A DNA stretch of 64,000 nucleotides from Geosiphon pyriformis uo1 (GCA_016748015.1 JAAOMT010000608.1:186001-250000), one strand, 5' to 3'. Counted from the stretch's first letter, positions 9,818-60,212 are shown. Program-made: numbers and translations. The notes: generated by a model not told the origin, from the sequence alone.

Positions 9818-11077
9818 ATGAACCTTTTACTGATTTTAAAAGAATTGATGCAAAAGATTAAAAGTTTAAAATATTTCATATCTTCAAGTTCTTTATTTTT
9901 TTTCATATGGTTTCAGTTCTGTTCATGCCATACAAAACCAATTTACAACGAAAAATACAATATTTATCAAGCACCTGTAACAAGTAGAGAACCTGAACAC
10001 GCAAACACAGTTTCCAATTTTACTCGGCGTAGCATTTGGAAATATTTTATTGAGCCAGTTTCAGATGAACAAAAACAATATTTTGAGAATATGGCTTATT
10101 ATGCAAAACGCGCTTACTGTTTTTCACCCATTACAGGAATAACTTTAGGCCAATTCTCTGGTATTTTTAAAATTCTGATCTTATATTTAAAATTTGTTAT
10201 TAACGTGAAAATAAGTTTTTGGGGTTTGTTTAGCCTGGATTAATACTGCAGAACAACATAATCCTTCTGGTTCGCAATCAAGCCAAACCGTTGTTGTACG
10301 ATTTGCCGGTCCCCTCTTAACTTATTCATATATGTGTGAAATAGAAAAAAGGCAGCTAGTCGCATTCAAAAATATCCCAGAAGCTCTTATTAATTCGGAA
10401 TTTTATAATGAAAAAATAATACATGCCGTAGAAACTTTTGTTGCCAAGTTAAAACTTTTTAGGCATTATGGCAACGTATATATATTCACTGGGCATGGTT
10501 TTGGGGGTGGTAACAAATTAAGAGTTTTTCAAAAAATCCTGTTTTTAAGCGCATATTTAAAATTTTAATAATTTTTCTTTTTCTTCATCTTTATCTAGTT
10601 CTCGCATTACTCACAGCTATCGCTTTTCACGAAGCTACAAATCGAAATATTTTAATTGACGTAACCACATTTGGTGAACCGAGGATTGGGAATAGTGCTT
10701 TTGCTAGATACGTGGATCATAGAATTTCAGTTAATCGAATTACCCATTCAAATGATCATGTACCGTTATTTTTCCCTCAACTGCGACATCATTCAACAGA
10801 ATTTTGGATCCCCCCTGTTACCAAGTTTGATTGTCATTGTGTTAAAAATTTCAAAAATTTAGAAATTTATAAATGTCCCACGGCTTTTAGAATTGAACAT
10901 GAGGTATGTGAGAAAAGTGGGAAATTAATTATCGAGATATTATTCTTAATATTCTTTTTATCTTATTTCTAGGGTTGTAGCAAACAGTTTCAGCCACCAT
11001 ACCCAGAACTCCCCGCAGAGAATATGAGAGCTCATTTAGGGCTATATTTTGGTTACACGATGGGTCCTTGTACATGA
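9818..11077 (+). CDS. Class 3 lipase-like protein L1, catalytic Ser replaced (GHGFGG), 342 aa
   Basis: Exons 9818-10160, 10234-10509, 10599-10903, 10973-11077 (GT-AG, in frame). Motifs YAKRAYC, VRFAGP, FTGHGFGG, TFGEPRIGN, THSNDHVP, EFWI...DCHC, AHLGLYFG. N-terminal hydrophobic segment. Confidence 0.92.
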
Positions 11078-11469
11078 AGCTAGTGTTTCACAAAGTTTTT
11101 ATTTAATTTATTAAATTGTTATGATGCGTCATTAAAATTTGTGCAAAGAGAATATTAATAATCGTTCAATTTTTAAGATTTTCGTATTATTATTAAAATT
11201 TGGCATAAGGTAAAAGGGGTATTTTGGTGAATGGAAGTATTGTAGCGACGTTAACAATTGTGATGGATTGTGATAAAAGAGTATAAAAAATGCTAATTGT
11301 TCAAGTGAGAAAATGGCATACTTTCACGCTTCACATTCTCCCACGTGAATTTCTTTTTTGCTAATTTCGCCACAATACTCTATTATATTAATCTTTTTCA
11401 GGATAAGTATATGTGATAAATTTGCAGTTGAACATTGATTTCTTTTTTCATCACCATTTAACCTTTTCT

Positions 11470-11720
11470 GTTATCTAGTATCTCTGGAATGGAAAATATC
11501 CAAGCATCATTGACATCTTTCATAAGAAAAGTTTCTATCCAAGGTCAAATAACGTGCTTGACAGCAAATGCAAAAATTTCCTTCATGTAAACGTGTGATC
11601 CAATCAACGAACCCTCAATTTTAAAAAATCCTGGGAGAGTTACATAGAAATTACTGAATAAATGAATTCTGAAATAGCTGTCACTTTAGCAGCCCATCTT
11701 TGGCATAGTCAATTTCTTCC
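11470..11720 (-). pseudogene. Fragment of a zinc-binding (MDR, Adh6/CAD-like) alcohol dehydrogenase gene
   Basis: The minus strand reads AKVTAIS and IEGSLIGSHVYMKEIFAFAVKHVI*PWIETFLMKDVNDA, matching the C-terminal GSxIGS...I(K/R)PWIE.....VN.A pattern. In-frame TGA at 11545-11547. Confidence 0.65.
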
Positions 11721-12457
11721 TTAATATGGATGGGAAATTTATCTTTCTAGATATTATCGTAGGAGAAAAAATGCTAGAATAAGCACAAAAAAACTTTGCA
11801 AAAAATAAACATAAAAAGTTGTCATTGTGGATAATTGGTCAAACCCGTTTGTGCGTTTTGATCGAAAAGCTTCAGAGAAAAAGAAGCTCATTTAAAATAC
11901 TGCAATCCAATCTTCATTATAATGTTCGTCTTCTTAAAATCAACTGTTGAATCAAATGTATTCTCTATCTGTTTATTTGTTTATAGCTAACAAACTTCGT
12001 TAGTCTAGGAAAGTTAATGATTAGCCATTTTTGGATTTAAAGCTTATTAAAACTAGGATGCACATGTGGCGTAAGGTGGATCAAGATTTTGACCAATAGT
12101 GCCTTAGCGTTTTGCATCATACTTTTTCTGGTGGTTCGAAGTAGAAAGGAAGCTCAAAAAGCGTTCAAAAATGAATATTTGAATCCTGAAATAATCGCCT
12201 TGGAAAAAAGGTATAATTTATTTTTGGGATATCCCTATGTTAAACATATCTTGGCTAAAGAAAAAATTTCATTTTCCTTATTTGCTTTTTTTTTTCAAGC
12301 TCCTTATGAGACTTTATCACTGCTTACATAATTTCTAGGGAACAAAGATTTCCTTTTGATTTTTATACATGAGTTAAATCTTACAGTCTACGTATATATT
12401 TATATATAAGCTTAATGGTTATGAAGAGAGACATATAACTCTAGAATTTCTTTTAAA

Positions 12458-13974: not shown

Positions 13975-14017
<43 letters not shown>

Positions 14018-14145
14018 GTACCTTCTTGCTGTTCCGCATGAGAAGTGGACCAAGGTGAAAACGTCGTGGCTGCATTTTGAATTGTTTCAGCGATATCATA
14101 CATTGAATCAATCTCACATTGTGATTCTTGTTTAAGATCGCGCAT
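12458..14145 (-). CDS. Type II membrane protein with adhesin-like (DUF4097-type) beta-solenoid repeats, multi-exon
   Basis: ATG 14145 (MRDLKQES...). Exon 1 ends at 14022. Exon 2 starts at 13909 and encodes a TM helix (WAFALFFCLLLTIILFSVIDILY). The C-terminal part has repeated (S/T)xxGxI units: VVNGNIEL, STNDGGKIHG, DTKSGSINL, KSAHGDISL, STNSGYID, DSNAGNIFV. Stop at 12458. Internal exons not all verified. Confidence 0.75.
13976..14017. repeat. (ATT)n microsatellite in intron 1 of the adhesin-like gene
   Basis: Direct inspection. It explains the poly-Ile run in ORF 13930-14325. Confidence 0.9.
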
Positions 14146-15176: not shown

Positions 15177-15208
<32 letters not shown>

Positions 15209-15684
15209 GATAATAATAATAATAATAATAATAACCAATTACTTTTTTTTATATATTTATCAAGTTATATATCAATTTTCAAAATTGGTTTTGAATCAAT
15301 TTATATAACTGATTTAAAATAGAAAAAAAGAATTTGTTCTCAATTTCATTCTAAAAATATGCTTACATAGCAAAAACATGAGGATCTAATTAAATGATTT
15401 CAATTTATTTATTTGATATCTTATGGAATAGATTTTCGAATTGATAAAAAATATTTTGAAGTCTTGATAGGTTAGGTTTGTTTAAAATCCCCAAAATTTT
15501 TTATTGGTTAATTTTTAAAAATGGGGCTGTGGCTATTTTCAAGTTAATCAACTTTTTCATACAAAAAAGAACGCCTAATGATAATTACATCAAAGATCAC
15601 ATATAATTGGATCAATTCTTTTTGAAAGTTAAAGATTTCATAATATTTAATAAAATTAATTTTCTTAATGAAATTATATTTCTC

Positions 15685-18600
15685 AATAATTTCATAACTT
15701 AAATTGTCTGAGTGAACTAAAAAGTAAATATTGATACTCACAAATAATTATCTTACCAAGCATATCTTCTTAGAATTTAAATTTTTTGACCAAATGTAGC
15801 AAGAAATTTTATTATTTTTTGCCAGTTTTTAAAATACTTCTTGTATTTATATATCTTTGCATTCCTTCCATTCCCGTTTTACAGTCCCCTATTGTAATAC
15901 CAAGATAAGAGCCTTTATGGGCTAAATTACTCTCAGCTTCTTTATATAACTGACCGCTGTTACAATTCTAGATAGGATATAAATAGGTAATAAGTTTTAA
16001 AAATTGAAAAAGTGGATCTGAATTTCAACTCATTAGAAAACTTCTTTAACTTTTACCGGATTTTCACCAGGGTCGCCAAATACCTCACATCGGTAAATCG
16101 GTTCATAATCATCTGGATTAGGACAATCACATTCGCGAGAAGCAATCCAATGCTCAACATTTGAATGAACATATTGTTCGCCTTCTTTTGCAACTGGAAA
16201 TTGTGGAACGTAATCATTGGTGTGGGTGACTCGAATGATACTACATTTTTCATTAACAAGTATTGCGAAATCTTTGTTCCCTATTCGAGGTTGCCCAAAT
16301 GTATAAATTTCTGTTTGGTCACCGAATGTATCACTTAAATTATCATTTAGTGCTTCAAGCTCATAAAGACATCCTGCTAAAAGAGCATACGCTATATTGA
16401 AATTAAATAAAGTTAATTTAAAATAGAGAATCTTAAATCCATGGATATATCTTTGAAAAAATTTGGAATTTGATAAGCTTACCGCCCCCTATTCCATGTC
16501 CTGTAAATTTCACCTTTAAGATCTGTTTATATTTTTGTGTTCCTTGAGCCAGCATCAAACGCCTTGCCAGCGACACATATGTTGCGATTTTTTTAAAAAG
16601 CCCTCCCTCGTTTATCATTTTTTGAACATGTTCATACCATACCTTATCAACTAAAGAATTTTTTGATGGAGATTGGAATACAGCCCAGTTTACTTCTCTC
16701 TGTTTCCATTCGTTCAACGATAATTCTTTTCCACGGAAATATACAATAATTTCCCTATTTTCAATTGGAAGATATGTACTTACTTTTTTTATCAGAGTGG
16801 CAGCTAAAATAAAGTTGAATAAAGATAAATGGTAGAATTCCTCAAACTTTAAAATAGTTTCAACAAATTAGAGATATGTAAAAATACCTATCACATCTGG
16901 CTCATTTACAAACTGACCAACATTATTTATCTTCATTGAGCAATAAGGTAAATTTGCGAATTGAGCCATCTCTTTTATATTTTTGCGTGGGATAGCATTT
17001 TTATGCATGGAATATTTAAAAGTTGTTTCAATAGTAGAACGAGATATTAGGACCTCCCGATCATTTTTGGCGTTTGTGTGATTTAATTGTGTTTGATTTC
17101 GTTGAATTTCTGGTTGATAACTTTGTACTATGAATAATTAAGAACTTTCAAAAGTTAGGTGAGAACACTTTGATAGCTTAAGAGTTTTTAAATATTTATG
17201 AGTTACTTTTTTTTATAGAATTTGGTATGTGCGGAAGCTCAATATATCGATTTTTCAGAAAAAATACATCGTAAAATGAAGCGAAAAGCCAAAAGACACC
17301 GATAATTGGGATAATTATTGTCAACCAAGTCTTTTGCGATTCTTTTATTGATGTATTAAGTATTTTCATCGGAAATTTCTTAGAAAGAGATGGTATCTAA
17401 TCACTTTAGTGCTGATGAATTGATTTGGTATATTCACGAAAATTATAAAATGACCCTTTCAATTGTTGGAAATGTAAAATCCGAATGAATAAATCAGGAA
17501 AATTCAATACAAGTTTTTATTATCACAATCTTTAGGATAAACTGATTTTAAATGCTTATTGAAATAAGAAGATGTACATTTTTATCTGTCTAGAAAATTT
17601 TAAATTGTATTCTGCCTTTGAATAAACCATGCAACAACCGGTTTCACCTTAGAGATCTCACAAGATCGATACTCTGGCAGATTCGGAACGCCGTTTCATT
17701 TCCCAGGAATCTTGGTCTTACTAAAAAGTCTGATGGCATCGTAAATACCTGGAGCATATGATAAAGTGCGTCATGCGTACTTAAATTATTTTGTTCTATA
17801 TAGCATTTGTTTTTTATTTTAAAATAACTCATATCAAGTATTTTTATAATTAGATTAAGTTCTTTTATTTTCCAGAAAAGTAAGCTCATAAGGTGATTAT
17901 CTTTCAATATTAAACCCCCACTTTTCTTTATAAGGTAAAAATATCCAAATCTATTAGGCATAATAGTTATGTTTTCTAAAGATTAAATCATGTTTCTCGC
18001 CCAATATATGACAATTTTTTAGTAAGGTCACCAAAATTTATATTGCTTAAAAGCAAACAATAAATCAAATGATATTTTTTATTATGAAAATCTAACACTT
18101 CATTTATCGACGAATTTTGAAAATCAGACTGTTTGCAAATAAAAATTTACTCAAGATTCTGATAATCAATATGAAGATTTCATTTATCAGAAATTCCCAC
18201 GGAGCATAAATTTCTATTTATTGTTAGTTTTCGTTGAAATCAAAATGTATCCTAAAAAGAAACTTATACAATTTCGATTTTTAGGCATTATTTTTTATTC
18301 ATATTAATTTTTTACCACTTATAGCAATATGATAAAAAGATCCTTTCCGAGATTATTAAACGTGAGAAGATGTCTACAAATGATATAAACTAGCGATTTT
18401 CTTGTGGGCAATAAAGTAGAAATAGATAAATAAAAGTTCACATGATTCAAGGGGAATAAATTCTCGGTATAATATCTCATCGCCTTAACTTAATGTATCA
18501 TTTGAATTTTGTCAAAACTAACTTCGATCAAAGCTGAATTGTTGATGGGAAAATGCTCATCCTAAATTTTCAGTTCCATTTGTTAATTCCCAGATCGACA

Positions 18601-19200
18601 TCATTTTATGACATCCGAAAATTACGGCTTTGTCAGAGTATTTTACCAATATTTATTTTACTCACAGAATTTTTGGAATTATTAATATTATTTATATTTA
18701 ATGTTGAAAATAAAAGGCTTTTTATTCTTTTATTGAAGAATACAAATCATCTGTTTACTTAAAATAAAAGTAAAAGAAAACTTAAAGTCATAAGTCATAA
18801 GCCAGAAATCAATGATATTGAACAGTCATCTTTAATATTCAGATTATATTAAAGTTTTTGAAACACAAGTTTTTTATTTTTAAAAAAATCAAAAGTTACA
18901 TAAATTAATATATTAAGATTATATTTCTTAATAAATTATTATAACATTTGGATAATTATTTTTTTATGGCTGCATTTATGTATATATATGTAATTAGTTT
19001 CAAAAAGTTTGAAACAATATATTAACATGATAATAAAAATTAGATAATAAAATATTGAGATATATACTCAAAAAAATAGCTCACATAAATAAACAACATC
19101 AAGTTTAATAGTAAAATGTTATTGTTTTATTTGTAATTCTATTAATTTTATTCTAATTGAGAACCAATTTTTTTTATCAAAAGTGGATAAATATTTGTTA
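15685..19200. repeat. Left arm of a ~3.5 kb inverted segmental duplication
   Basis: Reverse complement of ~22230-26165. Near-identical over the lipase 5' region and upstream DNA (e.g. 17740-18100 vs 23390-23760), decaying towards the inner end. Confidence 0.93.
15812..17369 (-). CDS. Class 3 lipase-like protein L2, catalytic Ser replaced (GHGIGG), 404 aa
   Basis: Exons 17369-17207, 17127-16888, 16803-16483, 16391-16057, 15967-15812 (1215 nt). N-terminal signal anchor WLTIIIPIIGVFWLFASFY. Motifs FANLPYC, VYFRGK, FTGHGIGG, FGQPRIGN, THTNDYVP, EHWIASRECDC, AHKGSYLG. Confidence 0.92.
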
Positions 19201-22230: not shown

Positions 22231-24417
22231 AAATATTTTTTAATAAAAAAATATAATTTTTCAATTAAAATTATTATAATTACAAATAAAAGAATGCTAT
22301 TTTTACCTTTAAATTTGCTGTTGATTATTTATGTTAGCTATGGTTTTAAGTATATATCTCAATATTTACAATTGATTTTATTAAATAAATCAGTTATTTA
22401 ATACTATTTATAAAATTAATTATTAATTTAAGTATTTATATAATTTTTATTATCATGTTAATATATTGTATCAAACTTTTTGAATCTGATATATATAATC
22501 AACCATAAAAAAATAATTATCCAAATTGCTATGACGATTTATTAAGAAAATATAATCTTAATATATCATTTTATAAAATAAGATTCAGTGCTATTTATAC
22601 ATTTTAAAAAAATTTAATAAATAAATGACTCATGGGTTAATAAGATTTTTCTTATTTTGGTTTATTTCTTGACTGGTAATAAATGTAGTTTTTGATCTTT
22701 TAAAATAAAAACTTATATTTCAAAAATTTTAATATAATTTGAATATTAAAGATGACTTATGACTTTAAGTTTTTATTCAATTTTTATTTTAAGTAAACAG
22801 ATGACTTGTATTCTTCAATAAAAGAATAAAAAGTCTTTATTCTCAACATTAAATGTAAATAATATTAATAATTCCATTAATTCTGTGATTAAATAATTTT
22901 CGGATGTCAAAAAAAGATGTCAATCTGGGAATTAACAAACGGAACATGAAATTTATGATGGGCATTTCCCAATGATAGAAATTATTCCCCTTGAATCATG
23001 TGAACTTTTATTTATCTATTTCTCCTATATTGTCCACAAGAAAATCGGTAATGTATATTATTTGAAGACATCTTCTCACGTTTAATAATCTTATTTAAAC
23101 TCGGAAAGAATCTTCTTATCATATTGCTATAAGTGGTAAAAAATTAATATGAATAAAAAATAATGCTTAAAAATCGAAATTGTAAAAATACAACGGTAAT
23201 AAAACTTAAGTTTCCTTTTAGGATACATTTTGATTTCAACGAAAACTAACAATAAATAGTAATTTATGCTCCGTGGGAATTTCTGATAAATTGAAATCTT
23301 CATATTGATTATCAGCATCACAGAATCTTGAGTAAATTTTTATTTGCAAACAGTCTACTCGTGTGATTTTCAAAATTCGCCAATAAATGAAATGTTAGAT
23401 TTCATAATAAAAAATATCATTTGATTCATTGTTTGCTTTTAAGCAATATAAATTTTGGTGACCTTACTAAAAAATTGTCATATATTGGGCGAGAAACATG
23501 ATTTAATCTTTAGAAAACATTATTATTAGGCCTAATAGATTTGGATATTTTTACCTTATAAAGAAAAGTGGGGGTTTAATATTGAAAAATAATCACCTTA
23601 TGAGCTTACTTTTCTGGAAAATAAAAGAACTTAATCTAATTATAAAAATACTTGATATGAGTTATTTTAAAATAAAAAACAAATGCTATATAGAACAAAA
23701 TAATTTAAGTACGCATGACGCACTTTATCATATGCTCCAGGTATTTACGATGCCATCAAACTTTTTAGTAAGAAGATTTCTGGGTGCTCCGAATCTTTCA
23801 GAGTATGAATTTTGTGAGATCTTTAAGATGAAACCAGTTTTTGCGTGTTTTATGCAAAGGCAGAATAAAATTAAAAATAGAATCCGGAAAGAACTAAAAT
23901 TTTTTAGGCTGATAAAAACGTACATCTTCTTATTTCAATAAGCATTTAAAATCAGTTTATCCTAAAGATTGTGATAATAAAAATTTTTATCGAATTTTCC
24001 TCATTTATTCACATTCCCAACAAGTGAAAAGGGTCATTTTATAATTTTCGTGAATATACCAAATCAATTCATCAGCACTAAAGTGATTAGATTCCATCTC
24101 TTTCTAAGAAATTTCCGATGAAAATACTTAATACATCAATAAAAGAATCGCAAAAGACTTGGTTGACAATAATTATCCCAATTATCGGTGTCTTTTGGCT
24201 TTTCGCTTCATTTTACGATGTATTTTTTCTGAAAAATCGATATATTGAGCTTCCGCACATACCAAATTCTATAAAAAAAAGTAACTCATAAATATTTAAA
24301 AACTCTTAAGCTATCAAAGTGTTCTCACCTAACTTTTGAAAGTTCTTGATTATTCATAGTACAAAGTTATCAACCAGAAATTCAACGAAATCAAACACAA
24401 TTAAATCACACAAACGC

Positions 24418-24437
24418 NNNNNNNNNNNNNNNNNNNN
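24418..24437. other. Assembly gap (20 N) with duplicated contig ends
   Basis: 24094-24417 is repeated at 24438-24761, directly after the N run. Confidence 0.95.
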
Positions 24438-24461
24438 CCATCTCTTTCTAAGAAATTTCCG

Positions 24462-26006: not shown

Positions 26007-26191
26007 TATATATATATACTTGTAAAATTATAAAAGCTAGCAAAAAAAGATAAAATTTTGTCAAAGAATTTAAACCTAAGAAGATATAATGCTTGGTAAG
26101 ATAATTTGTGAGTATCAATATTTACTTTTTAATTCACTCAGACAATTTAAGTTGTGAAATTATTTAGAACTAATTGTGTACGAAAACACTT

Positions 26192-42745: not shown

Positions 42746-43127
42746 ACTGGCATAGAAAAATAATAATAGAAATATATACTGACTAATTCAATTGTAATAG
42801 ATTCATCAAAAATTTTTTACATGCCAAGTGTAAACGAATATTTTTTGATTGCATTGATTGCAAGATATCAAAAAAGGATCTCATTTGTATTGAAAAAGTT
42901 CTAATCTGAAGATATATGTATTCTTATCTTAAAGTAGGTTTTTGATGGTTTTTACTATTGGGTCTATAATTGAGTTCAAATTTTTATACTCAAATAATAT
43001 TCTGAGAAAAATCATTAATAAATCTTTGGAAATTGATTCTATACTTATAATTATGAACATTGAAAATTTGTGATATAGAATGAGATATCTGCAAAAATAA
43101 AATTTTGAATCTACCTCTGAGTACACA

Positions 43128-44717: not shown

Positions 44718-45081
44718 TCTACATAGAATTTGCCGATAGGGATTCAGAAAATTAATGTCATATAATTTAAAAGGTTGTCATTTTTTCAAGTAGTACATAT
44801 TTATTTTTCGAATCAAAACAAAATAAAAAGAGTAGTAAAGGTTTTGTTGTAAACTTTTCATTGGCCATAAAAGTGAGACAAGTTTTTTGCTTCAAACACA
44901 ATCTCGGTAGAAAATTGTTTGTTTAGATCCTAATATTGGATATACATTTACTTAGATACTACTGGCCAATGAAAATTTGCTATAAAATTAATCCTCAAAA
45001 CACAATTATATAAATATATAACCACCCAAAGGATGATTTTACGAGAATCCCCCTTAAAACGATCTATATTTTTGATGTAAA

Positions 45082-46533
45082 CTAAAAGTGATCGCCACCT
45101 GATCTATCAGGACAAACCATTTTCACATCGAAATACGGGCCACGATGGTCACCAATAAGGAAACCATTTGCACTATTGCTACATTTCTGGTTTTTTTTTT
45201 AAAAAAAAGCATATTCAGTTCAGCAAAAATTTCAAATTGATTCAAACTCTGTTATTCATCGTAATTCTGAAATACTGACTTTATTCTCCCTAACTCCTTG
45301 ACTTCCGTTTTCGCTGCAAACTCTTGCCTTGTTATTTAGATCAATCCAATATTCAGGGTTAGCATGAACATAATTTTCATTTGTATGTGGCATGGTGATC
45401 GGGAAATGAGGAACAGGATCAGAAGCATGGGTAATGCGGAAATTATTTGAGCTATATGCAGCGTTAGCATAGTTTTGATTACCAACACGTGGTTCTCCAA
45501 AAGTGATTACTTGCGTTTTCAGATTGGGGAAGGTTTGTTTTAAAATTAACGAGCAAAATTCTGCGTAAACTGCAGCAAATAGATAAATTTTCATTTCGTT
45601 ACTCGAATAAATATCATTTTAAATCCAATATGCAAAACTTACCGCCACCTAAGCTAAAACCAGTTAAATATATCTGTGTTGCTTGTTGTTGAACAATAAA
45701 TTGCACAAAATCCTTGCTTTTTTGACCCCACCATGCCCAGAACGCGTCGAAAAATGCCTTAACTACCAAACTTTTATTTATTTTTGGAAACGGTACTGTG
45801 TCGTCGCCAATTCCATAAGGATTCGTCATCATCTGTCCAACATTGCCTGCAAAAACTATTTTGACACCATTATTTACCTTCGACCAAATGGCTTATTATA
45901 GCAAAAAATTAAATAAAAAATTAGGTCCTCGATTAATATCAAGAATACAAGGTCAAAAAAAAATTTATAATCCTCTTGTATTTTACCATAAATTTGTGTG
46001 TTACTAGGCCTGTTGCACCAAGTATCCTTGGAATCTTTGGCATAACTGGCTAAAATTGATATTTGATTAGGCATCACGGTCTCAAGTAATGGCAATTCCG
46101 ATGTAGATTGAGAAGGTAACGAGGCAATCACAGAATCTGAAAGATTGGGATCGGGAAAATCAGTGAGGCTAGCTGTTAAATCTGTTGTTGAAGCCTGGTT
46201 GATTGATAGAGGGTTGAGTCCAGAATTGAGACCGTCATCTTGGACAAAGGCCAAACTCGAATCAGTTGACAAAATATTGGGATTATCTTCCAACCCCAGA
46301 TTTAATTTGTCATCAAAGTTTTCCCCCATATCCTGAGAATTTTGGGTAGAGCCTATAGTGAAGGAAGACGGTGATAAAAAATCGTTATCCCCTGGAACAA
46401 AATTATTGATATTTGAAGGACCAAAGGGATCCATGTTATTGTTTATTGGCGATGCATTAATGATAGAGTATGAATCAAAAAAACTCGACACAAATACAAA
46501 GTAAAAATAAAAGAAAATGATATAGTTTAACAT
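45082..46533 (-). CDS. Secreted class 3 lipase-like protein L7, Ser retained (GFSLGG), 396 aa
   Basis: Exons 46533-45987, 45891-45643, 45569-45280, 45186-45082 (1191 nt). Signal peptide plus acidic S/N/D-rich pro-region. Motifs IVFAGN, LTGFSLGG, TFGEPRVGN, THASDPVPH, DHRGPYFD. Confidence 0.92.
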
Positions 46534-46706
46534 TGAAAAAAGTAAGTTTATGAAATAGCCGTTTATAGCAAAGAGTTGAAGAGAAAGTATTAGAATATTT
46601 AGGAAAATAAGATTTCTGTTTACAGTTTGCCTCTATTTTGAATCTTTGACTTGCCTTTTTATCTTCCTGTTTGACCTTTTAAAAACTGATAACAGCTAAT
46701 ATGGTG

Positions 46707-46761
<55 letters not shown>
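46707..46761. repeat. (AAT)n followed directly by (ATT)n: palindromic microsatellite
   Basis: Direct inspection. Centre of symmetry at 46741/46742, with perfect arms of ~20 bp. Confidence 0.9.
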
Positions 46762-47343
46762 AGATTCCGGGAAAATGAAAATTTTTTGTATAACAAATGA
46801 GGAAAAGTTACCAACCTAAAGATTATCAAGCAGGGTGCAAAGAAAAATCAAAGGTTATTTGATAAATTCTGAAATTTACAATAAATAAATTTTTTTAGAA
46901 ATTCCATGTTGTTATCTTAATAAAATTTTAGTACTGTAGTTATCTATTTTTATTTTTTGTGGTCTATGATAAGCAATTAAAATTTTTGATTTTCCGTAAT
47001 TAAGGGTGGTCATTGATAAGATTCTTTTCAAATCTCAACGTCACAATTAGGCTTGAAATAGATTTTTCGGTATTGCATGACAGTTTTGGTTTGATAAATG
47101 AAGCAGGCCTTTTAGGTTACATTCTTAAATTAATGTATAATTGATATTCAAAATTTTTCAATCTATAAATATTTAATTTATTGGAAATGATCAATTAAAA
47201 AATTTTGAATTTAAATTTAATTCTGAAATCACGAAAAGAAAAAAAATTGGACCATAAAAACATTTTGACTGTTTAAAGAAAATACTATTCTTGACAATTT
47301 TTAAACTTAAAAAATAAGTAATTAATGTTGCAGAAAATTATCT

Positions 47344-48861
47344 CTAGCAAGAGGATGGCAACATTGAAAATCCAAAATAAGGTCCAAAGTGATCCAGTTG
47401 TACCACTTGTTGACTCTGATTTATACAAGACTAGAAAAAAATTTGAATCGGTTAAAGCATAAATTTTCGGCTAAACAATACTAAATTCGATGTCAAAACC
47501 ACTACACTCACTTTACTCTCGGTAGCAACTCCCAAATTTTTTTCTGGAGCTGGGCACGGTGCACCAGTTACTTTTCCTCTTGGGATATAAAATTCAAACC
47601 CAGGATGTTTAAATTTGCCATTAGATGGTTTACGTGGATACGGATCTAAACCATACGTCACTCGCCAGACCAGTGCTTTACTTTCCACATAGTTTGCATT
47701 CACTTGATCGCTTACTCGTGGCATACCGTATGTAATTACATAAGGCAATGGCAAATCTTTAACGGCTTGGTTTATTTCTACTGCAGCAAATTCAGCCAAG
47801 GCTATAAACATGAAATGTATATTAAAAAAAATGAAATTTATCCAACATCAATAACTTATGCCATATTGTAAAGCTCACCACCACCAATTCCAAATCCAAC
47901 AAAATAAACAACCGGTTTTCCTTTCTCCTCGATCACATTTTTGTAACTTTCAATATTTTGGTTGCTCCAACTTTTATATAGTGTGTATAGGTCCCCATGA
48001 ACAGAACCTCCGTCTTTATGAGGCCATGATTTCATTGAAATATCATTATTTGGGAAATAAGAATCAATAAAGTTTTCATTTGCTGCAAAAACGACGACGA
48101 TTCGGTTTCGATTATTCTTATTGTCGTAATAAATCTCCGCTGGGTGATTAAGAAATTTAGAGTGTTATTTAAAGTAATTTTTTGCAAATTTAATTTTAAT
48201 AGGAAATTGTACCATTGATCGTATCAGAATTACCGCCACTCAAAACTCGTTTGCAATAAGTCGCTTTAGCAATTGTTGCGAAATACTGTAACATAATTGT
48301 TGGATCCGCTGCTAGACGTTCAAATTCTTTTACTGGAATTTTTTGTACTTGTTTCTCTTGTGAATCAGTTGCTGCTGTCTCTTCATAAAATGAAAAATCT
48401 TTATCAGCTAAAGTTATTGGTGAAGAATTGAACTCTTGATTTGGGTTTGGTTGAAATGCAAGTATATTGTCTTGATTAGTTAAAAATGAAGTGTCAGGTG
48501 ACAAAGTTTCCTCCATTGATGTTAAGTTATTTGAATCATCATCATCCGGAAGAGAAGCAAACAGGTTGTTTTCAGTATTCTGATCATTGATAGAACTGAA
48601 TGATGTATCTTTAAAGGTATTGAAAGGGTTTTGATTTCCAAAATTTATTTGACCAAAAGGAATGTCCGAATTTGAATCTAATCCTAAAAAATTCTCGTCA
48701 TTTCTTTTCGAGAGTTGATTTAATGGTGTCGATCTTACAGGAGGTATGATTAAAAGTTTTATTAAAAGGACAAAGATGGTAAAAAACTTCAAGAAAGTTG
48801 TTTGAATTTTGAATGTCTTGAAGAGGATTCTTATTAAATTTGATAGAACTTTCTCACTCAT
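47344..48861 (-). CDS. Class 3 lipase-like protein L8, catalytic Ser replaced (GFGIGG), 428 aa
   Basis: Exons 48861-48213, 48139-47879, 47801-47512, 47430-47344 (1287 nt). Signal peptide, KR site and acidic pro-region. Motifs IAKATYC, VVFAAN, FVGFGIGG, TYGMPRVSD, TYGLDPYP, DHFGPYFG. Confidence 0.92.
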
Positions 48862-49544
48862 GATTCTAAAGGTAATTAATATTTTTGAAATGGTTTAATC
48901 AGATCGAAAGAAGTTAGTTGCCAAAATTTTTAGGAGAATTTTAAAATTTTTAATTCAACCTTAAAATTAATTGTTAAAAAGCTCAACCCCAGCAAGGTGG
49001 GAATCAGAAATTATAAATAATTTTTAATTTTCTATACGTTTTTCCTAAAATGGGCTTCGATTTATAAAAAGTTGTTGAAGAATTTGATAGATAAAAGATG
49101 TTCCGGATGGTTTGGAGGGATGAGCTTCAAAACATTTATCCGAATTTTTGTGAGTCCGAAATGTAATTTCAAAAGATTATTCCCCTTATTATTATTATTT
49201 TGGAATTAAAGATTTGATAAATCATGTTGAAATGTTAATTTTTTGATAAACTAATTTAAAGTAAGCAATCGCAAAAATTTTGTTTATGTTACTAGATTCA
49301 AATACTCAAATATTTTTTTTATTATAGAGCACTTGAAACAAAAATTTAAATAGACCCCTGATATTGCCAAGTATGGAAAATCTATGATGAAATTCCCTTT
49401 AAGAGAGATGTGCATTTCCTAGGTTATTATAAGGGGAAAAACAATTTTTCGAAATCTATTCAAATTTTGAATAATTTCTTAACTCTTTAAAATATTTTCA
49501 AACAACGTTAAAAAAAGGATCAAAAATTCTATTTAATAACTTAT

Positions 49545-50926
49545 ATGACTTTAATATATATAAATCATGTATTTTCTAAGAACCATCGGAAAATATTAGT
49601 TTCATATTTTATTTTTATATTAGAATTGAGTTTAATATCTTATCTAGTTAAAGGGAACCCAATTGATTTGATTACATATGATAATGACTACGGGAATAGT
49701 CTAAATTTAATTAAACCCCTTCAAGAACTAAATCAAACTTTTTATATTGAAAAAAATATTGAAGGGTTGTCGAATGCAAGAAATACAAATCTTTTGAACT
49801 CGGTTGATGATACGTTAACAAATTTGATTGATTCGAATATGGAAAAAAACTCATTTACCGAATTCAACTTCGATTCTTTGATTAAATCAGTAAATTCTGA
49901 ATTAGATCTTACAAATATGCTCAGATATTTTGTGACTAAAACGTTATATACTTATTGTGAACGTGAAGCACAAAAAGATAAAAGTGTGACTATATATGGT
50001 AAAATTTCAACAGATATTTAAATCTAAGAATTTGTATGCTTATAATTTTATAATTTTACCTCTATAAAGTTTTAATATTTTATTTCTAGATAATACTACT
50101 TATGAAATATGGGAGAATGAGAAAAGAGTATTCATATTTTTCGCAGGGAACGAATTAACAATGAAATATATATTGGATCCAAATGAAGGAACTTTGATGA
50201 GAGAATACCCTTATTATCAGAAAGGAGGACTTGTAAATGCCAGACTGTTGATCACTTTTATATATTGGAAGAAGTTGAGATTAATTTTTTTAGCAGATTT
50301 TATTAAAATGCACGAGATGCCAAAAGTTTATTTAGCTGGATTCAGTTTAGGTGGTGGTAATTTTTGAAATGATTTAATATTTATTTTTCTCTTATGAACT
50401 TTTGAACAATTTCCAAAAAATTTTAATTCAAATTTTTCTTTCATAAAGCTTTTGCACAATTAGCAGCCATCGCATTGAAAGAAATAATTCCTAATCTTCC
50501 AAAACCGACGGTAATCACTTATGGCTCTCCACGTATAGGAAATCAAGACTTTGCTAATTATGTTGAACGAAATACAAATCTCTTGAGGGTAAATTATGGT
50601 TTAGATCCAATTGTACGAAATCCTACAATTTTTAATAAAGTAAAATACGTGCATGCCGGAATTGAATATTACATTGCTGAAGGAAAAAGAGAAGGAAAAA
50701 TTATAGATATTGAGGAGAAAATTATTGGTGTTGCTGCTGAATCACAAGTATGTGACTAATTAATTAATGATGAATAATTTTTATTATTTTTTTAATTTTG
50801 AAAATTTATTTTATGATAATTTATATTCTAAATTTACAGTTTAACGGAATAAATCAGTTTAAAAATTTTCGAAAATCAGATCATTTTGGGCCGTATTTCA
50901 TTTCGAAAATGATTTGTAATATGTAA
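49545..50926 (+). CDS. Secreted class 3 lipase-like protein L9, Ser retained (GFSLGG), 368 aa
   Basis: Exons 49545-49998, 50090-50356, 50449-50747, 50840-50926 (1107 nt). Motifs TLYTYC, IFFAGN, LAGFSLGG, TYGSPRIGN, NYGLDPIV, DHFGPYF. Confidence 0.92.
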
Positions 50927-51741: not shown

Positions 51742-53328
51742 TCACTGATGATCACATCGCATCAAAACTCCATAATAAGGTCCAGAATGATCTTTTGGAG
51801 TTTTTTTGGTACTTCGATTAATGCATTCCTTGGATTCAAAAGAAAATTTTAAAATATTTAGTTTCAAATAGAACAAATATTTTATGGTATAATTAAAAAA
51901 AACAAAAAAAACAAAAAAAAACTACTCGATTAACTTACCAAATTTTCCCTCGAAAATGCTCCTTGGTCAGTGGCACAGAACACACCATAAGCTCCAGGCT
52001 TTTCAATCCAAACTTCAACCCCACTGTGAACATATTTTTCATTTGCATCTTTTACAGGAAGACGTGGAATTGGATCATTGATATATGTGAATCTTAAAAT
52101 ACGTCCAGCGGAAAAAAGGGCTTTACTAAAAGCTTCATTGCCAATACGAGGTGCACCAAAAGCATACACGGTAATTCGTATGTTGCTGTTCACATGATTT
52201 ATTGATAATGCTGCTAATTGAGCATATACTGATAATAGATTTTCAAATTCTCAAATTAAATTGAATAGTCAAATTTTGTTAGTGAACGAAAAAGTCTAAA
52301 AAAATAATTGAAAAGTCATACCTCCACCTAAACTATATCCCGATATTGTAATTTCATATTCATATTTCTCAGTAACTTTTATCCTTTCGAAATTATTACG
52401 GTGCTTTGACCACCACTTTTCAAAGAGCGTATACCAGCCTTTGTGAACCTTAGCCCCTGGTAGACCTGGGTAATTAATCATCGTGGAATCTTGAATATCC
52501 TTTGAAAGATTTTCTTCATTCCCACTAAAGACAAAATAACCACCCAAAGGATCCGCGTCTCCTCCTGTGATTTTAGTAAAAAGTTTATATTTTGACTGGA
52601 ATTAGTGTGAAAATAAGTCTATAGCATTAATTAACAGATTGATAGGATAAAAAAGATTTCACACCTAATACATAATCATCCGTCTGAGATCTGACACAAT
52701 AAAAAGCTTTTGCATGTTTCGCCATCTGTGCAAAAAATTCTACTTGTCCTTTCGTTATAGAAATAAAGTTTGAACTTTTTTTTTCTGCCGCAGCTAACAA
52801 GGAGTTAGCTGATACGATTTTAGCGATAGTAGGTTCCATTTTTTGAGGTAAAATACTTAATGGTGTCTCATGAATGAGGAAATTCTCCGAATTTTGACTA
52901 TCTTCTAATTGAGGGATAGAAATAATATTGAGCTGCTCAGTTGTAAAACTATCCGAGACATCTTCAAATGAGGTTTTCAAATTTGAAAAATCAATATCTG
53001 TATTAGTCTGTCCTGCTAGATTTTCACCGGGAAAGTCTAAAGTTAGATCTTTGGAATAAGAAAATGGTAAAGTGTTATCAGCTTCAAGATATTTGAATTG
53101 AAATTGTGGAAAGTTTTTATTATATTTTGAAGAAAATTGTGAAATATCGGGATTAAGGTAGGGTAATAAATTACGCTTATAGGTGATTGAATCTTGAATG
53201 AGAGGATTTAAAGGCTTCTGATTTTGGCTAATTCCAAAAATTGGGGTTGCGTAAACTTTGAAGCAAAAAAATTTCACAATTAAATATGACAAGAAAAAGC
53301 TTCTCATCATCATCATCATCATCATCAT
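51742..53328 (-). CDS. Secreted class 3 lipase-like protein L10, Ser retained (GYSLGG), ~427 aa
   Basis: Exons 53328-52665, 52564-52322, 52228-51939, 51828-51742. An alternative in-frame intron-1 donor/acceptor pair is also possible. The start lies in an (ATG)8 run. Motifs HAKAFYC, FVFSGN, KVHKGW, ISGYSLGG, AFGAPRIGN, YINDPIPRLP, DHSGPYYG. Confidence 0.9.
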
Positions 53329-55273: not shown

Positions 55274-56739
55274 ATGTCTTCCACTAATCAAATAAAGATT
55301 GGTCCAATTTTAAAGATTTTTACAATAATCATTTTATTTTTTATAGTTGTCTTGTTTCTTGACCAATTTTTTCAACACATCAAAATTCCTGATTATCAAC
55401 CAGAGGTCTTTAAAAAGAATCCACACTACAGAGAAAAACGAACACTTCCTGTTAGACCTGATGTGGAAGAAGCTTTCAAGTATTGGGTTAAATATGCAAA
55501 GTAAGAGGACGTTTCATTTTAAAAAGTTTTATCACATAAAAAAGCAAAAAGTTTTGAATCAAATTTCTGAATTTTTCAAATTAGCGCGGCGTATTGTAAT
55601 GTAACGAATTGGAAATGTGGTCAAGCGTGTCGTGGAATTACTAGAGATACAAAATTATTGCATTGGTTTCATGAGACGTCTAATAAAGCATATGGTGAGT
55701 TAACTTAACCCTACTTTTGACTTCAAAATTATTATTTTCAAGAGAAATATCATATTACTCATTTGTTAGCTTTTTTAAAGTCGCTGTTAATGATGAAAAA
55801 AAGGCTGTAATTATGTCCTTTAAAGGTTTTGAACTCGAAATTTATTGTTTTTAGTAAAAATCAACTATATATTTGATTAACTATTGTGTTTCTCGAAAGG
55901 AACTTCGGATATCCCATCCGTAATTACAGATTCTAAGGCTAGGTTGTTGAATTATCCTGGAGTTCAAAATGCAAAGGTGCATAGTGGGTAAGTGACAAAA
56001 AAAATTTACTCACTTATCTAAAACTTTTTATTTGAACTTGAAACAAAAAAAATTATTCTTTTCTACAATAAATTTCAAGGTTTTGGGCTACATACCTTGG
56101 GACACGTAATGAAACAGTTGGATTTATTCAAAAAATATTTCCACAATATCGCAATTACACATTTATTTTAACAGGTCATAGTCTTGGAGGAGGTGAGATA
56201 ATTTATAATTCAAAATCTTTGTTTCCTACTTTTTCTTATATTGAAACTTTTATAAATTTTGATTTTATTAGCAATTGCGATTTTACAATTACTTGACTTG
56301 GTGAATCTTCGTGTGTTCACCCCCAGAAACTTGATAACTTTTACTTATGGACAACCACGGGTTGGAAATGGCGCTTTTGCGAATTATGTCGATTCAATAA
56401 ATTTTCCAATTTTCAGAATTGTCAACAAAAATGATATCGTTCCACATCTTCCACCGTGGACACCAGTTGTCGGATATCGTCATCATTCTCCGGAATTTTG
56501 GATTCAATTGTAAGAATAATTTTTTTATCACTGATCCAGTCTCTTTTGAATTTATTTATTTATTTATTTATTTATTAAATCCATGCAATTTGAACAGTAA
56601 CAACACGATGATAGAGTGCACAGGACCAGAAGACTGGCAATGCAGTAAATCACTTTCTCCCAATTTCGATCCCTTTGCACACATGAATTATTTCCACACT
56701 GATTTTCTTATTACTTGTTTGGCTCATGAGCGTCATTAG
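55274..56739 (+). CDS. Canonical class 3 triacylglycerol lipase L11 (Rhizomucor/Rhizopus type, GHSLGG), 320 aa
   Basis: Seven exons: 55274-55500, 55585-55694, 55781-55825, 55900-55987, 56080-56192, 56272-56509, 56598-56739 (963 nt). Full motif set YANAAYC..WKC..C, SFKGTSD, KVHSGF, TGHSLGGA, TYGQPRVGN, NKNDIVPHLPP, YRHHSPEFWI, ED..CS, AHMNYF. N-terminal hydrophobic segment and KR site. Confidence 0.95.
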
Positions 56740-57538: not shown

Positions 57539-58364
57539 TTATTTTGAATAATTTAAAAAATGCCTAGCATTATTGTTCAACCTTGAGAAAGTTGGATTAA
57601 ACTTTAAAATTTTGCGGAAATTTAAAAAGAAAGGATGAAAAGGTGAATCATCTTTTTCATATTTCACATTTGTGATTTCTTGTTCTTTTTGTTTATCGAC
57701 CATGTAGTCAAGTCGGTCCAAGGCTCTACGATTATCCAATCTAAATTTTCTTCCTTTACCATTAGGGTCAATATCAAGAGCATATCCATCTCCTGCCACG
57801 CAAACTGCAAGGTTATTATAAAGATTATTAATCAAATAAGTCTACATAATAAAACTAGGGAAAAACTTTTCTTGTGAACGATAAGGCCAATGATCAAATA
57901 TTTTCCCTCAGTATTGCTTTTTACATGGCATGTGGCTCACCTATTTTTCCCATGAAAATTATTCTCCAAACTATTGAATTATTTGGGCATTCTTTAAAAA
58001 TAATACCACGCCAGGAATGGTTTCGAATCTTGAAGGAATCACGGCCAATATTGTGTTCAATATCATATTTGTGACGCCTAATCATTTCATTCATAACTCT
58101 TTGTTCATTCACGTACATTCCTACATCGAAACCTTCTGGTATAAGGGTTGGCAGTTGGGGTTTTATGTATAGTAGTCCGTAGATATTTTTTCCTGCGAGA
58201 TTTCGAGGAAAAGGTCGTATTGAAGAAAATTTGCGAATAGTGTGATTTATATCAAAATATTGTATGGTTGTCGGTTTTATTTTTTGTACTTGCTTAGTTA
58301 GAAATGGTTGGCTGGCACTTTTTATATGAAACTTGTTTTGTTTTAAAACCTCTTGGATTACCAT
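57539..58364 (-). CDS. Hypothetical protein, two exons, 229 aa
   Basis: Exon 1 58364-57941 (donor G|GTGAGC) and exon 2 57804-57539 (acceptor TTGCAG) join in frame (690 nt): ...WRIIFMGKI|VCVAGDGYALDIDPNGKGRKF... The N-terminus is basic with IRKFSS, a possible mitochondrial presequence. No family recognised. Confidence 0.7.
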
Positions 58365-58646
58365 GTTCGAAAGAAAATTTGACAGAAAATTTATTATCTG
58401 CTGTCACAAGAAATTTTTGATCATAAAAATCTTTTTTTGTCCTACGATGATTTCTGACTGTGATAAATTTTGTGATCAATACAGACAATAGACCAGTCCA
58501 GGACCCAAGTACATGTGTAATAGATCGTTTTTAGCCAATAGATACACGTGGGAGACATCCCGAACGGACTCATAAAAGATTGAGTCAAGACGTAATGTGA
58601 TGGAGGGACGATCATTAAAACTTCACCATTTGATGCACAACACCAA

Positions 58647-60212
58647 TCAAATTCTGCCCTTTTGAGGAGCACTTAACTCTTTCTCACAACTAGCCATTGA
58701 TATTCCAAAATATGGCCCGAAATGATGCTCAAGAATTTTTATAGGATTCTTATTGATGCATTCCTAAAAAATGACATTCATCAATAAATTAATTGCGACT
58801 TTTAGATTGATGGAAAAGTTAAATCATTTAAGTATTCTACCTGATTTTCACTTTCTACATCTGCCTTCAATGGATCCTTTACAGGTTGACAAATTAAAAA
58901 TTTTCCATTCTGTCCACTGTTCCATATCTCAGTTCCAGCATGTAGATAAGGATCATATCCCGGGCCGATTGGAAGTCTGGGAATAGGATCATTCTGATTT
59001 GTAAAGCGGGTCACAGTGGCAATCGAGCTCAGATGTTTTGCAAATGCTGCATTACCAATTCGTGGTTTACCGAATGAGAACACAGCTATGATTAAAGGCC
59101 TTTTAAGTCTTTTATGGAGCGAAATTGCAGCGAATTCTGCTGCAACTATTGATTAAAAAATGTTTGAGCTTTGTTTTATTCGACCAAATTTATCAAATAA
59201 ACAAACAGATTAATAGAAATTCAAACAGACTAACCACCACCAAATCCATAACCATAAAATTGAACCGTATTCCATGACGGATGGTTATCAATTTGATTCA
59301 ACAAATCAGGGAGTCCATACGTTTCCCATTCAATATAATGCTCATACAATACTTGGTGTACTTTTGCACCATTTACCCCAGGAAAATCTATCCTTCCTGA
59401 ATTTTCCAAAGTCATAAATTCTTTCAAGTTTTCTTCATTTGCTCCGAAACCAACCAGGGCTAATGTATCTGCGGCGTCAGGTAATCCTGCTTTAACGGTC
59501 AAGTAATTTGAATAAAAATTTATCTCAACAAAATCATGCAAGAACCTAATTATGAATTCAAAGTAATCATGAAATACTTACGGTTAGCAAAAAGGAGTCT
59601 GCTGAAAATATACTCAGATGGACTTTTCATACTTTTGCGAATACAGTAGATTTTTTTGGCAGCTTTTGCATATTCTTTGATATATTTTGCTAAAATTTGT
59701 CCTGTAGTTGGATCAAATTCTTTTCCATTGCCCTTGTTATTGTTGAAAACATTATCTGAATATGTATTAAAACCGGGAAGATATCCTTCATCAACAATTT
59801 GGTCGGCGTTACTAAAATCCCAATTTATTGGAAAGGAACCATTTTGATCTTGGATATCATGAAAGTTGTCTGGAAAGGCAGAATCAATTTCCGTCGGATT
59901 ACTGGCGACTACTTCTCCCTTTGGGTTAAAGATCGCAGTCTCACTAATATCCGGTTGATTATTCATTAAATTAGCTTCTTGATCATTCAAAGATGTAAAA
60001 AAAAGATTTAATTTGGTCTCTTGATTAGGGTGGTATAAATTGAGTCCACTTTTAAACCTTAGTACATCATAAAGCTGAGAGTCATATGTATCTGGCCAGT
60101 TTGAATATTCCAAGATAGGTATTGCTTGAACCAGTAAAAGAAAACAATTTGGATAGAAAATCACGAGGCATATTATCGTATTGGAAATCAAGTTAAAAAT
60201 TAATATCGCCAT
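58647..60212 (-). CDS. Secreted class 3 lipase-like protein L12, catalytic Ser replaced (GYGFGG), 435 aa
   Basis: Exons 60212-59582, 59489-59235, 59145-58841, 58763-58647 (1308 nt). Signal peptide plus acidic pro-region. Motifs AAKKIYC, VGFGAN, KVHQVL, FYGYGFGG, SFGKPRIGN, NQNDPIPRLP, HHFGPYFG. Confidence 0.92.

Follow-up and report, generated by a model that had tools for sequence, protein, structure and literature searches.

What does a lipase gene encode when the catalytic serine of the lipase has been replaced by glycine, and is such a gene decaying or maintained? We address this question in a 64,000-nucleotide stretch of the genome of Geosiphon pyriformis uo1 (GCA_016748015.1 JAAOMT010000608.1:186001-250000), called the window hereafter, which carries an array of 12 class 3 lipase genes (Lipase_3, PF01764), named L1 to L12, between positions 9818 and 60212. 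Geosiphon is a fungus of the Glomeromycotina (Archaeosporales) that houses Nostoc and is related to the arbuscular mycorrhizal (AM) fungi; to our knowledge, it is the only fungus with an intracellular cyanobacterial symbiont, and it is a sister of the AM fungi. An earlier note, made from the sequence without knowledge of its origin, had placed the DNA in the AM lineage, rightly as the source organism shows, and had proposed that eight of the 12 genes with glycine (Gly) instead of the nucleophile serine (Ser) encode selected, secreted or surface lipid-binding proteins rather than decaying enzymes. Beyond this note, our analysis adds a family of ~300 copies, a replacement of the oxyanion residue and of the V-H-x-G-F motif, repeated switching between Ser and Gly, and ratios of non-synonymous to synonymous substitution rates (dN/dS) of 0.5-0.8 among recent copies.

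Gene models and nucleophile codons

The window (27% G+C by base count) contains a lipase elbow followed by G-x-P-R exactly 12 times according to a six-frame scan. GT-AG spliced models of 320-442 amino acids (aa) with zero internal stops could be built for all 12 genes, as listed below.

L1: 9818..11077, + strand, Gly-type, subfamily A, 342 aa; exons 9818-10160, 10234-10509, 10599-10903, 10973-11077; nucleophile codon GGT at 10497-10499
L2: 15812..17369, - strand, Gly-type, subfamily A, 404 aa; exons 17369-17207, 17127-16888, 16803-16483, 16391-16057, 15967-15812; GGA at 16493-16495
L3: 24462..26006, + strand, Gly-type, subfamily A, 399 aa; exons 24462-24624, 24704-24943, 25029-25355, 25448-25800, 25890-26006; GGA at 25343-25345
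L4: 31249..32673, - strand, Gly-type, subfamily A, 398 aa; exons 32673-32238, 32160-31894, 31822-31476, 31395-31249; GGC at 31904-31906; spliced elbow GHGIGGS
L5: 39735..41228, - strand, Gly-type, subfamily A, 392 aa; five exons 41228-40781, 40706-40656, 40588-40394, 40289-39919, 39848-39735; GGA at 40404-40406
L6: 43128..44717, - strand, Gly-type, subfamily A, 442 aa; exons 44717-44147, 44069-43791, 43703-43342, 43244-43128; GGA at 43801-43803
L7: 45082..46533, - strand, Ser-type, subfamily B, 396 aa; exons 46533-45987, 45891-45643, 45569-45280, 45186-45082; AGC at 45653-45655
L8: 47344..48861, - strand, Gly-type, subfamily B, 421 aa; exons 48861-48234, 48139-47879, 47801-47512, 47430-47344; GGA at 47889-47891
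L9: 49545..50926, + strand, Ser-type, subfamily B, 368 aa; exons 49545-49998, 50090-50356, 50449-50747, 50840-50926; AGT at 50344-50346
L10: 51742..53328, - strand, Ser-type, subfamily B, 427 aa; exons 53328-52665, 52564-52322, 52228-51939, 51828-51742; AGT at 52332-52334
L11: 55274..56739, + strand, class 3 lipase of the canonical type with K-G-T as oxyanion motif, GHSLGG, Asp and His; 320 aa in seven exons; AGT at 56180-56182
L12: 58647..60212, - strand, Gly-type, subfamily B, 435 aa; exons 60212-59582, 59489-59235, 59145-58841, 58763-58647; GGA at 59245-59247

The chance of a stop-free frame this long in DNA of 27% GC is 1e-13 to 1e-17 per gene. Deposited proteins agree with several of the models: L3 equals NCBI G9A89_002337 over all 399 aa, residues 92-342 of L1 (251 aa) and 95-404 of L2 (310 aa) are 100% identical to G9A89_002334 and G9A89_002336, respectively, L6 is 97% identical to G9A89_002340, and L5 is 97% identical to part of the fused model G9A89_002339. 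Two splice sites allow alternatives, i.e. the first-intron donor of L8, which is 48234 or 48213, and the last-intron donor of L12, which is one among three in-frame choices. The set of 12 spliceable, stop-free Lipase_3 genes that the earlier note described is borne out by the GT-AG models, the NCBI matches and PF01764, and its assignment of Gly to L1-L6, L8 and L12, and of Ser to L7, L9, L10 and L11 only, holds for every codon and strand. The spliced models were used for alignment, trees and dN/dS, and the search queries were exon sequences, exon alignments or database proteins.

All 12 genes share the intron that the note had described directly after the elbow, in phase 1 and with donors GG/GT(A/G) at the elbow junction (the slash marks the splice site). 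After splicing, the elbow motif reads G-H-G-x-G-G-(A/V/S), which corrects a G-G-G reading. L1-L10 and L12 have two further introns in common, one in phase 1 before the elbow exon and one in phase 0 before the last exon, which carries E-C-N...H-x-G-P-Y-F-G. L10 begins with eight ATG in a row (MMMMMMMM; 53305-53328, - strand) that adjoin an (ATT/ATC)n run; its start codon is the site of a trinucleotide repeat.

The pairwise aa identity among the 12 proteins is 18-35%, except for L2 and L3 at 89%, and three groups can be distinguished. The first, subfamily A (L1-L6), is all Gly, with the motifs G-H-G-x-G-G and T-H-x-N-D-x-V-P and a cysteine insert C-x-C...C...C-N-x-G. Subfamily B (L7-L10 and L12) mixes Ser and Gly in the elbow G-(F/Y)-(S/G)-x-G-G and has a long Asn/Asp/Ser-rich linker after the signal. 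L11 forms the third group, a short canonical lipase with K-G-T and GHSLGG.

NCBI labels these genes 'hypothetical protein', contrary to the expectation of the note that automated annotation would call them 'lipase'. Its models often fuse array neighbours (G9A89_002339, 988 aa; G9A89_002340, 509 aa; many with 2-3 lipase domains), and others lose the N-terminal signal exon, e.g. G9A89_002334 and G9A89_002336, which begin at an internal Met. Secretome predictions made from such fused or signal-less models will therefore miss these proteins.

Lipase fold and remodelled active site

The Gly copies keep the lipase domain. PF01764 matches the exon after the elbow with E values of 1e-9 to 1e-11 and 37-45 bits in seven Gly copies (cut-off 22 bits), and the corresponding exon of L8 scores 20.6 bits (E 4e-4), slightly below the cut-off; full-length NCBI proteins of the family carry the domain. 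The elbow exons of subfamily A taken alone stay below the Pfam threshold, which we attribute to the sensitivity for short fragments because the downstream exon and the full proteins do match. The profile match starts at position 75/76 in the post-elbow exon and stops at 75/76 in the elbow exons that score, hence the intron cuts the lipase domain at one common point in every gene.

We predicted the structure of G9A89_002336 (L2 residues 95-404) using AlphaFold2 with a 96-sequence family alignment, and obtained a predicted local distance difference test score (pLDDT) of 90.9 and a predicted template modelling score (pTM) of 0.92. The best PDB matches of this model in Foldseek are the Aspergillus feruloyl esterase FaeA and the Rhizomucor, Rhizopus and Thermomyces lipases with probability 1.0, the TM scores to 1UWC, 6QPP, 1TIC and 3TGL being 0.5-0.67; EDS1 and PAD4 come lower in the list. 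When the family profile is compared with PDB, it matches the Thermomyces lipase with E 4e-33, placing GHGiGGaYA over GHSLGGALA and G-P over G-S83. The profile and Foldseek matches confirm that the family shares the fungal class 3 lipase (alpha/beta-hydrolase) fold.

Parts of the old active site are retained. The triad Asp, the His and G-x-P-R are present in all 12 window proteins despite their strong divergence, as the note had claimed. We compared 136 Gly-type domains, consisting of database cluster representatives and the window genes, with 89 outside lipases. The triad Asp is kept in 135 of the 136, the triad His in 101 of 118 aligned Gly-type domains, with Asn in 12, and five Cys together with the G-N after P-R in nearly all 136.

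Other parts have been replaced. The Gly of L1-L6, L8 and L12 aligns on Ser146 of the Thermomyces lipase (TLL). The residue following (R/K)-G, which aligns with the oxyanion-hole Ser83 of this lipase, is Ser or Thr in only 11 of 125 Gly-type domains (Pro in 40, Lys in 16, Arg in 10) versus 84 of 86 outside lipases. The oxyanion triplets in L1-L6, L8 and L12 are AGP, RGK, RGK, -GS, RGT, GGK, AAN and GAN, respectively, so among the window Gly copies only L4 (S) and L5 (T) keep a Ser/Thr. At the level of sequence, the Gly copies are shown to lack two elements needed for serine-hydrolase chemistry, namely the nucleophile Ser and the oxyanion Ser/Thr. The canonical V-H-x-G-F motif has become V-D-x-x-W in the Gly-type family (V 76%, D 64%, W 57%), and new conservation is also seen for a Trp of the lid region (59%) and for a Tyr that follows the elbow (76%). 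Since newly conserved residues take the place of the oxyanion residue and of V-H-x-G-F, the site has been remodelled and then conserved, not merely degraded.

The proteins are probably exported. A hydrophobic 15-mer (Kyte-Doolittle (KD) value 1.5-3.5) lies within the first 55 residues in all 12 window proteins, which would fit the secretion or anchor signal that the note assigned to every copy, its nature as a signal being judged by hydrophobicity. In L4, L5, L6 and L8 a basic stretch of 25-39 residues precedes this segment, so that it resembles a signal anchor rather than a signal that is cleaved off. Each window protein has 2-9 Cys, whose conserved pattern is in keeping with an extracellular location.

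The family in the Geosiphon genome and in databases

The pattern GGN CAY GGN NNN GGN GGN G/GT occurs 293 times in the genome (128.3 Mb in 792 contigs), compared with one occurrence of the reversed-pattern control. With WSN as the nucleophile codon, this pattern was found 50 times, namely 45 Ser, 3 Cys and 2 Arg. For the F/Y-type elbows, the Gly pattern gave 35 raw matches, of which about 30 look genuine (the control gave 5), versus about 22 with Ser. Overall, roughly 83% of the intron-bearing elbows have no Ser (about 325 Gly versus about 67 Ser); the tally of GxSxG against GxGxG that the note proposed across Mucoromycota has thus been run for the Geosiphon genome. A Pfam search of the genome gave 783 first-look candidates.

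A profile of the post-elbow exons of L1-L6 matched 2786 proteins with E<1e-3, and 327 with E<1e-10, among 1.84 billion cluster representatives. In the best 150 of the 2786 (50%-identity cluster representatives) the elbow has Gly in 122, Ser in 14, Ala in 8, Asp in 3, and Phe and Arg in 1 each. All 18 close relatives that were looked up are 'hypothetical proteins' of Geosiphon, and two GHSLGGA proteins come from a fly and a nematode. A full-length profile search returned only Geosiphon proteins and two multi-copy nematode lipases down to E 1e-34, followed from 1e-31 by nematode, plant and Dikarya lipases, and no other Glomeromycotina protein was among its best 120 matches. A homologue search with a single protein gave only 12 Geosiphon matches, and it was the profile search that showed the gap to the outside lipases. 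Of the 89 non-Geosiphon lipase domains, 88 have the Ser nucleophile.

Judging from these searches, the window array samples a larger family, specific to Geosiphon, that has about 300 Gly-type copies. We found no published description of the family in the literature on Geosiphon, class 3 lipases and pseudoenzymes; the publication of the genome (Malar et al. 2021, Curr Biol) may mention a Lipase_3 expansion. Further Gly elbows lie on the same contig outside the window (44845, 129536, and 1354 on contig C419), and contigs C371, C376, C378, C541 and C563 have arrays of 4-10 copies. One other locus (L008) has the order Gly-Ser-Gly, as seen in the window array.

Repeated exchange of Ser and Gly

Ser and Gly have replaced each other repeatedly at the nucleophile position, at least three times. 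We built a tree of 173 domains without the elbow columns, on which the distribution of Ser and non-Ser cannot be explained with fewer than 9 changes; branches with good support force 8 of these. Lone Ser members are nested in Gly clades on this tree. Ala occupies the position in one clade (GHA-I-GG; P0026, P0029, P0136, P0143, P0152, P0155 and P0156), and Asp in three separate members (GHD-x-GG; P0027, P0106 and P0132), where it could in principle serve as the nucleophile.

A tree of 25 domains makes L8 (Gly) and L9 (Ser) sisters with support 100/99, and L12 (Gly) and L10 (Ser) sisters with support 96/90. A single clade of L8 and L12 is rejected by the approximately unbiased (AU) test with p 0.0002, this group having been named after the first tree was seen. 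L11 groups with animal and Dikarya GHSLGGA lipases. The two mixed pairs together with the all-Gly subfamily A imply at least three Ser/Gly changes among the window genes. Because the Ser codons are AGY and the Gly codons GGN in the window, one transition is enough for a switch.

Selection and transcription

The Gly copies are, as far as sequence comparison can tell, selected pseudo-lipases that are maintained and not decaying. This part of the earlier proposal is supported by the intact open reading frames (ORFs) of copies at 20-30% identity, by the core kept in 136 domains, by the splicing of L8 described below, and by the dN/dS of L2 and L3. For the latter pair we obtained dN 0.059, dS 0.110 and omega 0.54, with fewer non-synonymous changes than expected under neutrality (binomial p 0.03), in agreement with the note, which had named such a comparison as a check. 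The long-term constraint on the core is strong, and the fairly high dN/dS among recent copies (0.5-0.8) means that the family evolves fast outside its core. The automatic exon finder that we ran on sampled loci is crude; it overlooked 12 of 50 elbows, the intact L11 included, and gives no basis for a pseudogene rate.

We compared the region 43100-48900 with one small public run (X1, 46 M letters, labelled 'RNA?'). A contig of 1041 nt covers L7 in four blocks, 45057-45186, 45280-45569, 45643-45891 and 45987-46347, and confirms all three introns. A contig of 516 nt covers L8 at 47374-47430, 47512-47801 and 47879-48036 with 0 differences, including the Gly codon. The contigs skip CT..AC, i.e. GT..AG on the gene strand, exactly at the modelled exon borders, so they derive from cDNA, and the Gly copy L8 is transcribed and spliced. 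The RNA check of splicing that the note called for is thereby answered for the introns of L7 and L8. No contig was found for L6 in this run, which is small, and its absence is no evidence of silence. We considered adenosine-to-inosine editing that would restore the Ser and rejected it, as it is impossible from GGN and the L8 contig has the genomic codon unchanged. The L7 contig differs from the genome by one extra T in a T6 run of exon 2 (45712-45717; CTTTTTTG) and by A>G at 46210; the extra T would shift the frame, and it may be a homopolymer error in genome or contig, or strain variation.

Assembly gap and neighbouring genes

Two structural features surround L2 and L3.

24418-24437: assembly gap (20 N) between the two copies of a 324-bp direct repeat, 24094-24417 = 24438-24761, 100% identical
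15677-18798 and 22752-26172: arms of an inverted duplication with L2 and L3, about 90% nucleotide identity

The gap is an unmerged overlap of two contig ends, since the 324-bp repeat is exact and the L2 locus aligns colinearly to both sides of the gap with the 324 bp counted once. The left repeat copy holds a spurious second L3 exon 1 and part of exon 2. The ATG of L3 (24462) lies to the right of the gap; no coding sequence crosses the gap and no gene is broken by it. An ORF of 105-119 aa without a Pfam match was duplicated together with L2 and L3 and lies upstream of each gene (17644-17961, - strand; 23582-23941, + strand).

Between L4 and L5, an exon at 35641-35970 (- strand) matches the C-terminal domain of malonyl-CoA decarboxylase (PF05292, E 5e-13). 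It represents a lipid-metabolism gene within the array, in a fungus seemingly without type I fatty acid synthase (FAS). Beyond L12, a gene of an S-adenosylmethionine (SAM)-dependent methyltransferase (Methyltransf_11/25, E about 3e-6; 61008-61445 and 60715-61050, both - strand) marks the end of the array on that side.

Possible functions of the Gly copies

We think that the Gly copies probably form an extracellular, non-hydrolytic family on the lipase fold whose pocket binds a hydrophobic or acyl ligand, with the Ser neighbours supplying hydrolysis. The window would be one of many tandem arrays of a birth-and-death family specific to Geosiphon pyriformis. Its proteins, secreted or signal-anchored and presumably rich in disulfides, would have kept the class 3 lipase fold and given up serine-hydrolase chemistry, and the lipase pocket and lid may have been retained to bind a lipid or some different ligand of hydrophobic or acyl nature. 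Such proteins could work at the surface of the fungus without hydrolysis, by capturing, sequestering, presenting or sensing the ligand, and any hydrolysis would be left to the few Ser-type neighbours L7, L9, L10 and L11. A lipid-binding role of the Gly copies is plausible in view of the modelled fold.

Several points weigh against this reading. The recent Gly pairs, including those on contig C371, whose dN/dS is partly inflated because the exon finder took some intron for exon, have omega values of 0.53-0.84, and the average constraint on young copies is accordingly modest or weak. Transcripts support a single Gly copy, L8 of subfamily B. The kept Asp and the frequent His could mean residual or altered catalysis instead of binding. 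Lipid binding is read from the fold, and secretion from hydrophobicity and the Cys pattern.

To connect the family with lipid auxotrophy and with the symbiosis with Nostoc is conjectural, if plausible as regards lipid dependence. In its boldest form, which we regard as doubtful, Geosiphon would use ~300 dead lipase-fold proteins as an interface for lipid or acyl capture and recognition toward Nostoc or its surroundings, one without an AM counterpart, and the remodelled pocket (G-H-G-x-G-G, V-D-x-x-W, the oxyanion Pro and Asp-His) would bind the head group of a lipid uncleaved. Geosiphon seemingly has no type I FAS. The earlier note had stated this for the AM lineage, and two fungal type I FAS domains found no match in the Geosiphon genome, in a search that had no positive control and counts as weak negative evidence.

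The fold might instead be a stable secreted scaffold for a fast-diversifying recognition, decoy or effector-like repertoire whose surface binds proteins or partner structures, e.g. the Nostoc envelope, competing microbes or lipase inhibitors, and not lipids. The lineage-specific expansion to about 300 copies in tandem arrays, paralogues at 20-30% identity, the dN/dS of 0.53-0.84 between recent copies, the mixture of Ser and Gly copies in arrays and the recurrent loss of Ser would all suit such a repertoire. The RALPH effectors of powdery mildews offer a precedent, as one preprint describes them as a large family whose members in cereal powdery mildews have no RNase catalytic residues (bioRxiv 10.64898/2026.08.13.744637). 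However, the best-conserved residues of the Geosiphon family, i.e. the elbow, Asp, His, G-x-P-R-x-G-N and the new W, D and Y, surround the old active site and the lid, which argues for a conserved pocket rather than a free surface, and we consider a recognition repertoire unlikely.

That the proteins are still enzymes seems to us quite improbable. A His-Asp dyad could serve as the general base that activates water or a hydroxyl of the substrate, or a different nucleophile, such as the Asp of the GHD copies, could replace the Ser, giving a hydrolase, a transferase or a lyase with a non-serine mechanism. The near-invariant Asp (135 of 136) and the common His (101 of 118) would be expected of such enzymes, the three separate Asp lineages and the Ser copies within Gly clades indicate that the site is not inert, and some pseudoenzymes may have moved the residues needed for catalysis, as stated in a review of pseudoenzymes (PMC10211241). 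But the oxyanion Ser/Thr has been lost as well, often to Pro, which has no backbone NH, 12 Gly-type members have Asn for His, and no alternative conserved Ser, Cys or Asp was found near the elbow in the family alignment. A recent lipase amplification that lost its active site and left functionless copies with ORFs still unbroken is very unlikely indeed. Some recent pairs do reach dN/dS values of 0.75-0.84 and most copies are without transcript evidence; yet copies at 20-30% identity are all stop-free with conserved intron positions, the motifs and the Cys do not vary between the 136 clusters, transcription and splicing are seen for L8, and L2 and L3 differ by fewer non-synonymous changes than neutrality predicts. 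For the family as a whole, we rejected the decaying-pseudogene reading, which is contradicted by the intact ORFs, the conserved core, the L8 transcript and the L2/L3 dN/dS.

Comparison with known systems

The fungal class 3 lipases and FaeA (Thermomyces lanuginosus 1TIB/1DT3, Rhizomucor miehei 3TGL/6QPP, Aspergillus niger FaeA 1UWC; PF01764) share with the Geosiphon family the alpha/beta-hydrolase fold, the G-H-x-x-G-G-A strand-elbow-helix, the G-x-P-R-x-G-N loop, N-D-x-V-P with the triad Asp, H-x-x-x-E-Y-W-I and the C-terminal His loop, and they are secreted with disulfides as is predicted for the Geosiphon proteins. In contrast to them, the Geosiphon copies have Gly for Ser146, Pro, Lys or another residue for Ser/Thr83 and V-D-x-x-W for V-H-x-G-F, the cysteine-rich insert C-x-C...C...C-N-x-G follows E-Y-W-I, and the N-terminus of many copies is drawn out into a long extension, part of which resembles a signal anchor.

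Non-catalytic relatives of lipases are known elsewhere. The plant proteins EDS1, PAD4 and SAG101 are derived from Lipase_3 and are matched by the Geosiphon family profile with E 1e-11 to 5e-4. They work without hydrolysis, and SAG101 has no triad. Unlike the Geosiphon proteins, they are intracellular, fused to an EP domain, form heterodimers and occur in few copies per genome, and EDS1 and PAD4 keep the Ser. The C-terminal EP domain was not found in the Geosiphon proteins, which end soon after the His loop and have only lipase-like domain matches; the relationship of the two groups is no closer than the Pfam family.

The insect non-catalytic lipases, e.g. the cyclorrhaphan yolk proteins and the venom and ovary homologues, likewise combine a lipase fold with an incomplete triad and are proposed or known lipid carriers. 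About 10% of the insect neutral and acid lipases have no catalytic motif (PMC7240578). These animal proteins belong to PF00151 and PF04083, and the inactive ones are a minority, whereas about 83% of the counted elbows in Geosiphon have no Ser. The RALPH effectors are similar in that they form a very large family, restricted to one lineage of obligate biotrophs, which evolves fast, uses the fold of an enzyme and is secreted, as is predicted for the Geosiphon proteins; in the cereal mildews its members have no catalytic residues according to the preprint. They differ in their RNase T1/F1 fold, in their small size and in the host-manipulation roles established for some of them, whereas the partner of Geosiphon is a cyanobacterium.

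Non-catalytic lipase homologues are a known kind, as single genes or as small minorities within a repertoire (the EDS1 family; insects, PMC7240578). What is new in Geosiphon is that hundreds of copies make up the majority of the counted repertoire in one lineage, with a coordinated remodelling of the nucleophile, the oxyanion residue and V-H-x-G-F and with repeated toggling between Ser and Gly.

Implications

Most of the counted class 3 lipases of Geosiphon have no nucleophile, yet they retain the lipase fold and its disulfide scaffold, together with an active-site region that has been remodelled. The lipolytic capacity of a lipid-dependent lineage would be overestimated by a domain-based count, as it scores the Gly copies as lipases. 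The close Ser/Gly paralogues L8/L9 and L10/L12 are natural matched pairs for a lipase fold with and without the serine. If the Gly proteins do bind lipids or partner surfaces, they would be candidates for the molecular interface between Geosiphon and Nostoc.

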